From positions 55,428,001-55,492,000 of the forward strand of contig NC_043002.1 of the NCBI RefSeq assembly GCF_006345805.1: a stretch of DNA of 64,000 nucleotides, read 5' to 3'. The notes under the pieces are model-generated. The model was not told the origin of the DNA, ran no database searches, and saw nothing but the letters and a program-made list of their open reading frames with translations. Positions 6,216 to 64,000 of this stretch are shown here, piece after piece. A program made the translations under genes and the position numbers. Each line of letters opens with the position of its first letter. The first letter of the stretch is position 1. Source of the DNA: Octopus sinensis (Eukaryota).

Positions 6216-8412
6216 TGAAGCGGTTTTCGCAAGGCCTCAGTAGCTGTGAACACTACTTTTGCATTCTTTTGTAAGTTTACATTTATTCATTCATATATTA
6301 TTGTTATATTATAGTTATTCTTGTTGTTGCTGTTGTTGTTGTTGTTGTTGTTGTTTGTTGTTTTTTGTTTGTTGTTGTCCTTCTTCTTCTTCTTCTTCTT
6401 CTTCTTCTTATTATTATTATATTATTATTATTATTATTATTATTATATATTATGATTACTATTATCATCATCATTGAGTGTTAGAGCAGTGCATGCCATC
6501 AACGTAACACTGGGTAACATAAACGAAGCCCAGTATACGTATCATGACTACCCGACTGATAATATAAATATTTATAACGACTATTCCATGTAAACGGACT
6601 TCTACTCCATTGTTTTTAATCCTATCTGTCCAAATCTCAGGCTCATAATATGTCACGTGTTTTTCTACAGCCACAAAACTCCAATGTTCTTCTGCGGTAA
6701 GCGGTCCTCACTTTATTCAATATGCTACTCAACCGGACGGAACTTACATTCCCTCAGCTCTACATTCAACACAATATCACCATGCCGCAGACAGACTTAG
6801 TCAGGTATGGACATATTATCAAACACCTTTTCTTGAAATATTTATACACTTTCTGTCGAAACTCGATTCTATATTTTATAAGAAATCTCCAATCATTGTC
6901 GAATAAAATTCAGCTTCTCACAATTCTTTATTACAGATTGCTCTATCCAATATGTCTGCAACGCAACCCTCAGTCAATATGTTACTGTGTTGAAGAATCA
7001 AAGGAAAAGAAATATGATAGGCTGTGTGCCCCTGCCAAACGTATACAGACAGAGTGTCATTATCGCGGGTGCTGTTCTAAATTCACCTCCCGCATCTGAT
7101 GCCATATTTTATTGTTATTTAAACAAACGCTTTATTAACCGGTAAGAATTATGTTCCTCATACTTCTCCCTGGATGATTATTTTAGATATTACTCGTAGA
7201 ATTCATCTGGGAAGTTATGGTTGTTTTATTTAAAGAAACTGTTGTCAAAGATCAATGGTTCCATTCTTAGATTCCTTTGGAGAAATATAGAATCATTTCA
7301 AAGCGTTCTTGCCTTCCATAGTTACCATACGATTACAACTTAATCTCTTCAGGTTTTTTTCTTCCTTAAGATTTTCTATTGTAAGGTGTTACGTGCAGAG
7401 GATAATCAGGTTACCCCATCCGCTATTCCCTCAGTTATATGGTGGCTTTTAAGTTGACAACAATGCGTAGAATTATACCAGCATAGAACATCTAATTATT
7501 TCAAGTAAATACTACAATTAGAATAATTTTGAACCGTTCAAATTTAACAACGTAACTTAGTCTATCAAAATGTTTTCTATCAGATATACGTGCATCCATG
7601 AGTTTCTATATTTCTTAGTAGCATATATCGTATACTACGTGTGTGTATATAGTTAGTATTAGGAAATGTGATACTTAATCTGTGTAAATGTCTCTGTCGC
7701 ATTGAATCTTGGGGAAAATTTTCATTTGCCATGATTGTATCTCATCTGCGTGAGATTTCATATGAATTTATATGTATTATATATGTATATTATAATATAT
7801 ATATATATATATATATATATATATATATATATATATATATATATCTATATATATATATAATATATATAATATATATATATATATATATATATATATATAT
7901 ATAATATTATATATATATATATATATATATTTATGTATGTATATATATATATATATTATATATATATATATATATATATATATCCATACGTAGAAATATA
8001 TATATACACACACACACATGTGTGTATGTGTGCGTTCGTGCGTGTGTATGTGTATGTGTATCATAACGTGTTTACTTTGAGGACTAAGAAACTTTCTTGG
8101 GAGGTCGAACATATTAAGCGTACGAGTATGTTTATAAGTGTGTGCGCGTGTGTGTGTATATATATGTGTGTGAGTCTTCGTGTGTGTCTGTGTATTAATA
8201 TCAATTAATTTTTATCCCTAATTTACAATATTCTTTTCATATATTTCAGATATTTTCAAACAAACATCAAACAAAATGTCGAAGTAGATGACAGTCTTTT
8301 GCTACCGGACGATGTGCCAATAATCCAGCAGCGATGGTTTACCATAATTACACTCCATACACTTCATGAAAATATAAACCCCATTCAAAATACTCTACAA
8401 TCCTTTATGTAA
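6216..8412 (+). pseudogene. copy A of the putative four-helix cytokine gene; promoter, exon 1 and most of exon 2 missing
   Basis: Exon 2 remnant ends 6270 (GTAAGT donor). Exons 3-4 at 6671-~7141 with indels and a ~33-bp deletion. Exon 5 at 8250-8412 with a 4-bp duplication. Confidence 0.85.
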
Positions 8413-8856
8413 TTAATTCCTGGTCTAATACTTCTGTAAACAATCTCAGTTAGAGAAAAATCAGATACAAGTGTATCGTTTCAATAATGTAGAAGTGTTT
8501 TAGCTTCACCACTTAATAATCATATCGACGATTATATTAATCGTTAGATAACAATATTTCCATCAATTTTGATCTTTATATTTTCTTATCACGTTTATAA
8601 TCGTAAACAATATATATTTCTCCTTTATGAAATAAATATTTCTATTTAATATTGTGTAACATCGATGTTATTGGTATTACACCGATGGGACTATGGCGCA
8701 TCAATCTAAATATATTTTTCTATATATTTACTTATGTATATATCTATATATATATTTTATATATACATACCTATATCTACGTTATTTAATTCATTGTATA
8801 ATTACTAATTCCTCATTCTACATACTATTTTTTAATCTTAATATATATATTATAAA

Positions 8857-9056
8857 AGGCGGCGAGCTGGCAGATTCGTTGGCACACCGGGCGAAATGCT
8901 TAGCGTTATTTTGTCTGTGCTTTAGTTCTGAGTTCAAATTCCGCCGATGTACACTTTGTCTTTCATCCTTTCGAGGTCGATAGATTTAGTAGCACTTGCG
9001 TACTGGGATCGATCTAATCGACAATCTCCCTCCCCCAAAATTCCGGTCCTTGTTTT
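8857..9056 (+). mobile_element. tRNA-derived SINE (octopus OR-type), same insertion carried in every unit
   Basis: Head GGCGGCGAGCTGGCAGA with A-box-like TGGCAGATTCGTTGG and B box GAGTTCAAATTCC. Family assignment from memory. Confidence 0.75.
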
Positions 9057-9945
9057 TGGAGTAGAAATGAAAATATATTCTAATGCATTTTCTGTAAGAC
9101 TTTCAGGCATACGCACACACACACACACCATCACACACACATGTATATACGCCAATATCAATTTCTATTATTTATTATATAAATGAGTAATATATTTTTG
9201 TATGAAAACATTAAAGTGTTAATATTTTATTATTATTTCAATTGTTTGTGTTTTTTGATTTTGTTCTTAGAGTGAATTACAACTCCCTTCACACATTTCT
9301 TTAATCTTTAAATATATTTTATATACATTATATTACAAGGTATCTCACTAATAGGACATTTATTCTGTCCGTGTTGATAAAATAAGCACCAATAATGTAA
9401 TGGGTTCGACGAAGTCCACTTACCACTCCTGCGAAATTCCTGACCTTGAACCAAGTTGGAAGCTATCACTCGTTGCATCGGTCTGTGCCAGAGGGAATCG
9501 TATATATATATACGATTGATTTCTTTCAGTTTCTATCTACGAAATGCATATATATATATATATATATATATATAGTATTACTAAATTTGGCGAAACTGCA
9601 GTATATAGAAAATTTCAGTTTGTAAAAGTTTTTTAAACCTCATCTCACGAAATTATCCCGCTATTGTGTATCTAGTACCCTCTTCGCCTTGAATGTAATG
9701 ATATATTATAATATATGGCGTGTACTGGTACACCGTCGATTATAAATTAATTTTATTGTATCCATTTTATCTTTGTTTACATATTCTCTCGATAAATTTC
9801 TGACCGTTAGACGATATACCACAATCCCCCTATTTTGTCGGGTTTGTTCGGAGTCTGCGCAGTGTTTTTTTGAATGTTTTTAAAAGAGCATTTCGATAGA
9901 AGCACCTGGATCTATTGGTAATGGTCTTTCCATCATTAACAGGAA

Positions 9946-10018
9946 CTTACTGATGAAGCCAGCCTGGTTATATAAATACTATTTTTATATTACTAAATTT
10001 GGCGAACTGCAGTATAAG
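9946..10018 (+). ncRNA. type I hammerhead ribozyme (Penelope-type), junction 1
   Basis: CTTA-CTGATGA-A-GCCA..TGGC-GAA(A)-CTGCAG-TA-TAAG. Palindromic stem III, GUA site. One A missing here but present in the other units. Confidence 0.6.
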
Positions 10019-61485: not shown

Positions 61486-62986
61486 CTGAAATATATGAAA
61501 AGAATATTGTAAATTAGGGATAAACATTAATTGATATTAATACACAGACACACACGAAGACCACACACATATACACACACACGCGCGCACACACTTATAA
61601 ACATACTCGTACGCTTAATATGTTCGACCTCCCAAGAAAGTTCTTAGTCCTCAAAGTATCACGTTATGATACACATACACATACACACGCACGAACGCAC
61701 ACATACACAACACATGTGTGTGTGTATATATATAATGTACGTATGGATATATATATATCTACATATATATATATATATATATATATATATATATATATAT
61801 AATACATATATATATAATATATTATATATATATATATATATTATATATTATATATATTATATATATATATTATATATATATATGTATATATATATAAGAA
61901 AAAGGGACAGGCAACAGGTTGCTTGACCGCATACCGAAAAAAGTAGAAATAGCAGTCAAAAATGCTTATTTCTAATTTCCACAAATGGGAAATTTGTGGA
62001 AATTAGAAATAAGCATATTTGACTGCTATTTCTACTTTTTCGGTATGCGGTCAAGCAACCTGTTGCCTGTCCCTTTTTCTATATACAATATATATACTGA
62101 ACTTTACAGAAGTTCCTGCCGGTAATCGGCTATATTTACATACCGAATTCTACCAGTAAATAATTGTGGTCTTTTTTTAAAAACCATTATAGAAATTATT
62201 ACCCATTATTATATATATATATATATATATATATATATATATATATATATATATATTATATATATATATATATATATATATATATATATAATATATACAT
62301 ATATATATATATATATCTAATATATATAGATACATATATATATATATATATATGAATTCACGTGAAATCTCACGCAGATGAGATACAATCATGGCAAATG
62401 AAACCTTTACCCCAAGATTCAATGCGACAGAGACATTTACACAGATTAAGAATCACATTTCCTAATACTAACTATATACACACACGTAGTATACGATATA
62501 TGCTACTAAGAAATATAGAAACTCATGGATGCACACGTATATCTGATAGAAAACATTTTGATAGACTAAGTTACGTTGTTAAATTTGAACGGTTCAAAAT
62601 TATTCTAATTGTAGTATTTACTTGAAATAATTAGACATTCTATGCTGGTTACATTTCTACGCATTGTTGTCAACTTAAAAGCGCCATATAATTGAGGAAA
62701 TAGCGGATGGGGTAACCTGATTATCCTCTGCACGTAACACTTTACAATAGAAATCTTAAGCAAGAAAAAAAACCTGAAGAGATTTAAGTTGTAATCGTAT
62801 GGTAACTATGGAAGGCAAGAACGCTTTGAAATGATTCTATATTTCTCCAAAGCAATCTAAAGAATGGAACCATTAATCTTTGACAACAGTTTCTTTAAAT
62901 AAACTAACCATAGCTTCCCAGATGAATTCTACGAGTAATATTTAAAATAATCATCCAGGGAGAAGTATGAGGAAAATAATTCTTAC

Positions 62987-63217
62987 CGGTAAATCCAGGA
63001 AAAGTATCGTATCAACCAAGTAATAAAGCGTTTGTTTTAAATAACAATAAAATATGGCATCAGATGTGGGAGTGAGTTTAGAACAAGCAGCGGGATAATG
63101 ACACTCTGTCTGTATACGTTTGGCAGGGGCACACAGCCTATCATATTCTCTTTTCCTCTGATTCTTCAACACAGTAACATATTGACTGAGGGTTGCAGAC
63201 ATATTGGATAGAGCAAT
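62987..63217 (-). CDS. copy E exon 4
   Basis: Open frame; splice sites mirror D. Confidence 0.78.
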
Positions 63218-63349
63218 CTGTAATAAAGTATTGTGAGAAGCATGAATTTTATTCGACAATGATTGAGATTTCTTATAAAATATAGAATCGAGTCTAGACA
63301 GAAAGTGTATAAATATTTCAAGAAAAGGTGTTTGATAATATGTCCATAC

Positions 63350-63484
63350 CTTGACTAAGTCTGTCTGCGCGATGGTGATATTGTGTTGAATGTAGAGCTG
63401 AGGGAATGTAAGTTCTGTCCGGTTGAGTAGCATATGAATAAAGTGAGGACAGCTTACCGCAGAAGCCATTGGAGTGTTGTGGCA
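63350..63484 (-). CDS. copy E exon 3 (exons 1-2 expected beyond the window end)
   Basis: Open frame; splice sites mirror D. Confidence 0.78.
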
Positions 63485-64000
63485 CTGTAGAAAAACACGT
63501 GACATATTATGAGCCTGAGATTTGGACAGATAGGATTAGAAAACAACGGAGTAGAAGTCCGTTTACATGGAACTAGTCGTTATAAATATTGATATTTACG
63601 AGAACATTATTTATATGATAGGTAATATATTATTGGAGTGGCATAACAAGAAGTGATAATAATAATAAAATAAAAAAATTAATAACAATAATAGTAGTAG
63701 TAGTAGTCGTAGTTGTTGTTGTTGTAGTAGTTGTAGTAGTAGTAGTAGTAATTATAATTATAATAACATTAATAATGCTAATAATAACAACAACAACAAC
63801 AACAATAATAATAATAATAATAATAATAATAATAATAATAATAATAATAATAATAATAATAATAATAAAGATGGGCTACAGCAAATATTCTGCTCAATAT
63901 CACAGATTTGCTTGTCAGTTGTTTGACCTTAACCAGTTGAGCATGTCCGTTAATGGCTGACGATATGTGCATCTCTGATTAGAAACAGAAGAAATGGGGG

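Follow-up and report, generated by a model that had tools for sequence, protein, structure and literature searches.

An array of candidate helical-cytokine genes, intact and decayed, in the genome of Octopus sinensis

Which kind of gene has been multiplied in a 64,000-nucleotide stretch of the Octopus sinensis genome (NCBI RefSeq assembly GCF_006345805.1, contig NC_043002.1, positions 55,428,001 to 55,492,000, forward strand; this whole stretch is called the window here), how many of its copies can be functional, and could the product be a cytokine? An initial annotation, made from the letters of the window, had described a five-copy birth-and-death array of a cytokine-like gene. The window is probably part of a large, recently amplified array which is restricted to coleoid cephalopods; the gene products would be secreted, N-glycosylated proteins with a fold similar to that of LIF and G-CSF, and candidate ligands for class-I receptors. 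Among the five copies of the window, just one or two can be functional.

Comparison of the window with itself by BLAST showed five homologous gene units with identities of 90–97%, in a background which is AT-rich (33% G+C) and contains abundant microsatellites:

~56–9578, forward strand: unit A
~18036–27446, forward strand: unit B
~32559–37803, forward strand: unit C
~45186–56371, forward strand: unit D
64000 to ~56640, reverse strand: unit E

Units A to D are 90–95% identical across kilobases, a homology far above chance, and their substitution divergence amounts to 4–7%. Self-BLAST and exon alignments placed all five copies, four on the forward strand and E on the reverse strand, where they had been described, but the term "five-copy array" is an understatement, since the array comprises tens of copies, of which the window covers a part only. 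An amplicon of 13–20 kb, as given previously, does not agree with the measured spacing between the starts of exon 2, which is 17.2, 11.2 and 14.5 kb. Nor does copy A begin at 6216; its homology begins at position 56, and what is found at 6216 is no more than the 3' edge of a long interspersed nuclear element (LINE). The peptides quoted in the initial annotation were all found where they were expected, at the following positions:

22722–22751: QLEAARKASV, copy B
33698–33727: QLEAARRASI, copy C
48407–48436: PLEAASRASI, copy D
6767 (A), 23937 (B), 49606 (D) and 63374 on the reverse strand (E): QHNIT
35154: QDDIT, copy C

The exon structure was taken from two RefSeq models of O. sinensis (230 residues each; P0003 and P0004) and was then located in the window. 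The corrected gene consists of five coding exons (exons 0–4), which encode a product of 230 residues, with GT-AG at all junctions. Exon 0 comprises 10 nt, ATGAATAACT, followed by gtaagt, and is present in the window at 19617 (copy B) and 46829 (copy D) only. The acceptor of exon 1 is cccgtag/AC, that of exon 3 is ttattacag/ATT, and the last exon is found ~1.5 kb further downstream of exon 3; exon 0 and the last exon had been absent from the gene view of the initial annotation. A first model with three exons, an upstream in-frame ATG, a partly read-through intron between exons 2 and 3, and read-through past LDLP to a stop at 50040, was dropped, because the RefSeq proteins of O. sinensis gave the 10-nt first exon, the ttattacag/ATT acceptor and a separate last exon. 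Exon lengths in copy D are 10, 158, 135, 231 and 159 nt, with intron phases 1-0-0-0; one intron interrupts the sequence of the putative signal peptide after 10 nt, and three are within the mature domain. A long trinucleotide microsatellite (TTA/TTG/ATT-type) follows just past the exon-1 donor in every copy (48466–48700, 22790–23000, 33770–34000), which yields misleading long "LLLL/IIII" open reading frames lengthening exon 1 in six-frame views.

With this model the state of each copy was determined as follows:

56–9578, forward strand: copy A, pseudogene; exon-1 remnant 6229–6270, exon 2 6670–6804, exon 3 6937–~7137, exon 4 8250–8412
19617–25935, forward strand: copy B, broken as assembled; exons 19617–19626, 22621–22778, 23842–23975, 24107–24339 and 25770–25935
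33597–36937, forward strand: copy C, pseudogene; exon 1 33597–33754, exon 2 35058–35191, exon 3 35323–35551, exon 4 36779–36937
46829–51627, forward strand: copy D, the sole gene which is both complete and intact; exons 46829–46838, 48306–48463, 49510–49644, 49777–50007 and 51469–51627 (including the stop codon)
61327–64000, reverse strand: copy E, partial; exon 2 63484–63350, exon 3 63217–62987, exon 4 61485–61327

Copy D contains an uninterrupted open reading frame of 230 codons with canonical GT-AG at each junction, and exons 2–4 of copy E are unbroken, with exons 0–1 beyond the end of the window. Both had been regarded as intact, E in its visible part, and this was confirmed. Copy A is destroyed, as described before. 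Its exon 0 would be expected upstream of the window; exon 1 has lost the 5' 106 nt (two-thirds), together with the end of intron 0, which were replaced by the LINE. The AG of the exon-2 acceptor is deleted, a 31-bp deletion has taken away the donor of exon 3 together with the last part of that exon, there are many other indels, and a stop codon is left even when the frameshifts are corrected.

Copies B and C had been considered ambiguous. This does not apply to copy C, which is dead: the codon of the conserved Cys57 has become TGA, exon 2 has acquired a TAG through a 1-bp deletion, and exon 3 contains a 2-bp deletion. The exon-0 motif, which was searched for in the whole window, is absent from copy C (the two matches at 19617 and 46829 belong to B and D), and the homology between C and D begins only at 32559. 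QDDIT is indeed present in copy C instead of QHNIT, but the loss of a sequon, which had been pointed out there, is moot, because C is a pseudogene. For copy B the former caution was justified, since it is broken as assembled, either by decay or by errors of the consensus. Its exons 0–1 are intact; exons 2–4 contain nine frameshifting 1-bp indels, an in-frame gain of 3 bp (CAG) and TAA at codon 161. Most of the 1-bp indels lengthen short homopolymers, and in exons 3–4 there are 9 indel events versus 3 substitutions, while the region upstream of copy B is normal (9 indels per 103 substitutions). The ratio of private 1-bp indels to substitutions is ~0.6 in A and B versus 0.15 in C. Owing to this indel-rich spectrum a consensus error is possible for copy B, and to judge from the sequence copies A and B may both contain such errors.

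Copies D and E belong to a tail-to-tail inverted repeat of 7.4 kb with a BLAST identity of 96.7%:

49000–56371, forward strand: left arm (D)
64000–56640, reverse strand: right arm (E)

In the self-comparison the aligned parts were 49000–56351 and 64000–56647. The arms are separated by a spacer of ~270 bp (56372–56639), which is not palindromic, and differ by ~1.4% substitutions (102 over ~7.2 kb), with substitutions making up most of the differences. In exons 2–4, D and E encode an identical protein, and there are 3 nucleotide differences in 525 nt, all of them synonymous. A hand calculation from the arm divergence of 1.4% gave a neutral expectation of ~5.7 non-synonymous differences in these 525 nt, where 0 were seen (P ~0.003). 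Copies D and E are either both under purifying selection or were recently homogenised. The tail-to-tail arrangement fits the normal architecture of the array, since copies in Octopus vulgaris and O. sinensis sit in inverted pairs. Both arms also contain CA-rich, strongly strand-skewed tandem repeats (53800–55200 and 58100–59100), with units of ~270–700 bp and GC skews of -0.48 and +0.54, respectively.

How far does the family extend? A search with the initial, partly wrong conceptual protein returned nine proteins from O. vulgaris, O. sinensis, O. bimaculoides and Argonauta hians, all labelled uncharacterized or hypothetical. When 1.84 billion representative proteins were searched exhaustively with a profile, 18 relatives were obtained; all of the named ones are from coleoid cephalopods, namely octopods and the cuttlefish Acanthosepion pharaonis. 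Among them are several paralogous groups of greater divergence, located on the same octopus chromosome. No homologue from non-cephalopod molluscs or other phyla was found in this search, and a search with a wider profile did not extend the family past the coleoids. A literature search with LOC numbers, UniProt accessions and keywords brought up no paper naming the family.

Scanning with the exons of copy D detected at least 18 further copies in ~170 kb sampled from the region 73.97–74.25 Mb (280 kb) of O. vulgaris OX597819.1. For the most part they are arranged in pairs which alternate between head-to-head and tail-to-tail, and in 12 of the copies none of the four main exons is broken. The loci of the O. 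sinensis RefSeq proteins contain two further copies, head-to-head. Orthologous segments of O. sinensis and O. vulgaris are ~98% identical (the flanks are ~2% apart), and copy pairs between the two species show ~1% distance of their coding sequences versus 3–7% between paralogues. Orthologues between the species are therefore closer than paralogues within a species, as is expected for birth-and-death evolution, and strong concerted evolution is not indicated. The window copies form a clade of their own together with one O. vulgaris copy (from the locus L001), with the markers QHNIT, NQRKRE and LDLP. L001 is also the closest of the fetched loci (96–97.5% identity); no fetched locus was identical to the window. 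A birth-and-death pattern is supported by the interspecies copy pairs, the separate clade of the window copies and the pseudogenes. The previous description as a birth-and-death array was appropriate in this respect, with an intact gene (D) beside dead ones (A and C) and one broken as assembled (B), and the assumed recent expansion is in line with the clade, which suggests a recent and local event.

Several deposited models of O. vulgaris are wrong. P0001 merges three adjacent copies and P0002 merges two, and P0005 keeps the intron between exons 2 and 3 and is without exons 0–1. A decapodiform homologue was present in a contig of SRR6517992 (L006, positions 101–757), in which exons 2–4 are joined without introns. 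Its open reading frame begins exactly at the exon boundary equivalent to Cys57 and ends at the usual C-terminus of the family. The sequence looks like a spliced transcript which has retained intron 1, while introns 2 and 3 were removed; its start at the boundary points to splicing and to conservation of the position of the intron. The gene caller had translated this contig with TGA as Trp.

What kind of protein is encoded? The N-terminal 22 residues of the D product, MNNYWQYVLVLCISVWTSFIQG, are hydrophobic, and the same applies to all full-length members of the family. Of the secreted signal family which had been proposed, the signal-like N-terminus and the N-glycosylation sequons are present; secretion itself would be predicted from these traits. 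There are six conserved cysteines, with a core of E..LC.PA....C.YP..C......D...YC.L plus two cysteines after helix A; four conserved ones are located around the BC loop (C130, C140, C146 and C159). AlphaFold2 with an alignment of 21 sequences produced a model with a pLDDT (predicted local distance difference test) of 83.5 and a pTM (predicted template modelling score) of 0.77. An earlier run with 5 sequences had shown the same helices at a pLDDT of 41 and was useless for a fold search. The modelled helices comprise residues 32–59, 97–129, 153–175 and 201–229, with additional short helices in the AB loop; the predicted structure thus has the four long helices and the long AB and CD loops of a long-chain four-helix bundle.

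A Foldseek search against the PDB retrieved almost exclusively long-chain helical cytokines with a probability of ~1, LIF and G-CSF being the best matches. Template modelling (TM) scores for G-CSF were 0.75–0.80 by target, with root-mean-square deviations of 3.2–3.8 Å, and those for the set of helical cytokines were 0.63–0.80; the other matches were prolactin, growth hormone, IL-11, IL-27p28, CLCF1, leptin, IL-6 and CNTF. A viral library, which served as a control for the fold search, contained nothing comparable except for one herpesvirus protein. This sole viral match of high probability (0.95; TM 0.53 by target) was Bov2.b3 of bovine gammaherpesvirus 6, which may be a captured helical cytokine.

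The term cytokine-like is appropriate at the level of the predicted fold, where a confident AlphaFold2 model matches helical cytokines, but not in the sense of the gp130/IL-6 sequence family, for which no Pfam, profile or motif match was obtained. The family is best described as an unannotated, new, lineage-restricted variant among the helical cytokines.

The copies are evidently not free to vary. Over 15 intact copies the mean synonymous divergence (dS) is 0.093 and the mean non-synonymous divergence (dN) is 0.036, which results in a dN/dS of ~0.39; the copies are therefore constrained coding genes, and the dN/dS comparison of paralogues suggested in the initial annotation points to purifying selection. 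The corresponding regional ratios of non-synonymous to synonymous differences (pN/pS), computed over the same 15 copies, are:

AB loop: 0.82
helix D: 0.68
signal peptide: 0.61
BC loop: 0.53
helix A: 0.36
helix C: 0.29
helix B: 0.24

No region exceeds 1, and there is no sign of positive selection in these copies. The decapeptides quoted before (residues 38–47) are indeed located in the predicted helix A (32–59). The paralogues do not, as had been stated, differ mainly there; of 12 residue differences between B and D, 4 are in helix A and 5 in the AB loop, and between C and D helix A contains 3 of 15. Pro38 and Ser43 of copy D, encoded by CCG and AGC, are unique among all copies seen. The suggestion that variation in helix A could alter specificity is a conjecture, because helix A has a pN/pS of 0.36 and no region passes 1.

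IL-6 genes have the same layout, their five exons being separated by four introns, of which one is near the start of the signal peptide and three are in the domain (PMC13081863), and the first intron of IL-11 is found 7 bp after the ATG (PMC3271213). The layout of the octopus gene resembles that of IL-6, IL-11 and G-CSF. The coding exons of human IL6 are 19, 191, 114, 147 and 168 nt long, and their phases are 1-0-0-0, too, which is to be taken as a lead and not as a test. According to a survey of 2026, molluscs possess an IL6R/Domeless-like receptor together with JAK and STAT, and no IL-6-like ligand was detectable in them by sequence (PMC13203501). Judging from the predicted fold, the family described here is a candidate for this missing ligand of molluscan cytokine receptors. 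Its intact products may be extracellular signalling ligands which, by analogy, could bridge class-I receptors of the Domeless/gp130 type and thus activate JAK-STAT, and the many paralogues could represent graded or tissue-specific variants.

Good descriptions exist of the class-I helical cytokines of vertebrates, and insects possess Upd. The vertebrate cytokines of the IL-6/gp130 group, to which LIF, G-CSF, IL-6, IL-11, CNTF and IL-27p28 belong, resemble the octopus family in the four long helices and the long loops AB and CD, as predicted for the latter, and are its best Foldseek matches. They are secreted and glycosylated, with ~200 residues in the mature protein and a pair of cysteines capable of forming a disulfide just after helix A, traits which the octopus sequences suggest as well. 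In contrast, the octopus family has no detectable sequence or profile similarity to them, lacks their signature, and contains four additional conserved cysteines around the BC loop. The vertebrate cytokines are also mostly encoded by single genes, whereas the octopus family is confined to coleoids and occurs in tens of tandem copies.

Upd1–3 of Drosophila are likewise secreted glycoproteins of an invertebrate, known as helical, IL-6- or leptin-like ligands of Domeless, and are encoded in a small linked cluster (PMC13203501). They differ in being larger and basic, and no arthropod protein was found among the 1.84 billion representative proteins of the profile search, so that a relationship to arthropod Upd at the sequence level is not indicated.

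The array itself is comparable to tandem families evolving by birth and death, such as the expansions of IL-17 and protocadherin genes, which reportedly occur in the octopus genome. In the window this is seen as local tandem and inverted duplication, intact genes together with pseudogenes, pairs of orthologues beside older paralogues, and gene death mediated by transposons; the protein fold and the family are different, and the octopus family considered here is unannotated.

Transposons and spacers of the window bear on the question whether the copies are separate loci. The following elements were recognized:

1724–6216, forward strand: GC-rich non-LTR (long terminal repeat) retrotransposon (the LINE in copy A), with 51–55% G+C versus 33% in the background; the open reading frame 3242–4057 matches RVT_1 (E=2.6e-19)
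20702–21538: LINE piece (zf-RVT) within intron 0 of copy B; 4487–5191 matches 20702–21405 at 90%
16743–17546: remnant of a mariner-type DNA transposon in the A-B spacer (HTH_32, E=8e-8; Transposase_1, E=4e-21)
13589–15945, forward strand: shared spacer block, inverted at 29827–27451 (97%) and rearranged at 42275–45156

The LINE in copy A is internally duplicated (3366–4407 versus 5194–6216 at 92.9%), and its portion 1724–1967 is repeated at 3726 and 5553. A stretch of 1.6 kb in the A-B spacer (16436–18036) has no counterpart in the C-D spacer. The B-C spacer (27451–31420) contains, besides the inverted block, the region 12184–13589 in inverted form as 31420–29959 (86%); to judge from the inverted block from the A-B spacer, the units were not copied as simple head-to-tail repeats. 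A pair of inverted repeats of 49 nt (14162–14210 and 15536–15584; 90% complementary) borders a 1.4-kb segment, which has the opposite orientation in the C-D spacer (42895–44296), where the flanks are direct. This segment was either inverted by recombination between the repeats after duplication of the unit, or it is an element with terminal inverted repeats. Scans of the window with Rfam models and for tRNAs gave no matches.

Haplotype duplicates, which the initial annotation had named as a possible objection, were considered for A to D and were rejected on account of the divergence and the unit-specific transposons. The private mariner remnant, the LINE piece in intron 0 of B, the LINE in A, the inverted spacer block and the flipped 1.4-kb segment argue for A to D as separate loci; with a divergence of 4–7% and the unit-specific insertions and rearrangements, the sequence favours separate loci for the copies.

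Could the array nevertheless be partly an artefact of the assembly, with D/E as a false inversion or as joined haplotypes, A and B as poorly polished duplicates, and the pseudogenes as consensus errors? Such an explanation would draw on the excess of 1-bp indels in A and B, most of them in short homopolymers, on the accumulation of indels in exons 3–4 of B, and on the low divergence between D and E. It appears quite improbable, since the substitutions among A to D are accompanied by different transposon insertions and rearranged spacers, and the lesions in C and A include nonsense codons and multi-base deletions. The differences between D and E are mainly substitutions, which would not be produced by fold-back reads, and inverted pairs are the rule in an independent assembly of O. 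vulgaris and occur in O. sinensis, too. A large array of genes for cytokine-like products is preferred as the explanation, and what weighs against it should be stated here. The copy number and the frameshifts of B are based on a single assembly, and the 1.4% divergence of D and E is within the range of allelic divergence. The fold was predicted from an alignment which is shallow and contains cephalopod sequences only, the E-values of Foldseek are weak (0.03–0.9), and the up-up-down-down topology would follow from the Foldseek matches. Pfam gave no meaningful match for the D product or any of the 21 family members, and sequence and profile searches of the PDB returned noise alone (MOB-like phocein, E=0.6). 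With hhalign, the probability for the family profile versus human G-CSF and LIF was <1%. The signature of IL-6 and G-CSF, C-x(9)-C-x(6)-G-L-x(2)-[FY]-x(3)-L (as quoted in PMC3271213), is not present either; residues 57–87 of D read C-x10-C-x6-L-L-x2-T-x3-F, where the spacing is off by one and the glycine and the aromatic residue are absent.

These results leave room for two other opinions on the protein. It could be a cephalopod-specific secreted helical protein with a convergent or superficial cytokine fold and a role other than signalling, for example in saliva or venom, mucus, egg coat, as a pheromone or as a carrier. The missing sequence similarity to any cytokine (in Pfam, PDB sequence and profile searches, and hhalign) and the confinement of the homologues to coleoids would agree with this. 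Large lineage-specific tandem arrays of octopus often encode tissue-specific secreted products, and we know of no counterpart of C130, C140, C146 and C159 in IL-6 or G-CSF. This explanation is regarded as unlikely, since the Foldseek list consists nearly entirely of long-chain helical cytokines and not of generic four-helix bundles, the exon layout is like that of IL-6, IL-11 and G-CSF, and the protein is like a typical cytokine in its size, its putative signal peptide and its predicted glycosylation. On the other side, in a stronger version of the preferred explanation the family would belong to the bilaterian IL-6/G-CSF/LIF-Upd lineage by common descent and not by its fold alone, as a true group of orthologues which has diverged strongly. 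Structurally LIF and G-CSF match best, and both groups of genes possess five exons, with one early intron in the signal peptide and three introns in the domain; the phases 1-0-0-0 are also those of human IL6. Common descent appears somewhat doubtful, however, since profile similarity and signature are missing, the profile search of 1.84 billion proteins contained no homologue outside the cephalopods, and phase-0 introns are common, so that the agreement of phases could be due to chance. Equally tentative is the proposal that these genes are the missing lophotrochozoan ligands of Domeless/gp130-JAK-STAT, as true but extremely diverged relatives of IL-6, G-CSF and LIF, which would have kept an ancestral five-exon structure with phases 1-0-0-0 and have been amplified to dozens in octopods.

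The history of the array can be read from the window as follows. The repeat unit was copied head-to-tail (A to D) and tail-to-tail (D/E), for which recombination between units, unequal and inverted, would be the simplest mechanism. Individual copies decayed afterwards, A by the LINE and deletions, C by losing its first exon and acquiring a nonsense codon and frameshifts, and perhaps B as well. D and E probably stayed under purifying selection. The window provides a clean example of the growth of a family by direct and inverted duplication and of its decay, where a LINE was inserted, a nonsense mutation arose or the first exon was lost. Copies B and D/E should be a caution to annotators, in view of models of O. 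vulgaris which fuse two or three adjacent copies or keep an intron. The family offers a concrete, expressible candidate ligand, which is testable against octopus receptors. If its members are true relatives of IL-6, G-CSF and LIF, they would provide an invertebrate whose nervous and immune systems are complex with a diversified set of cytokines.

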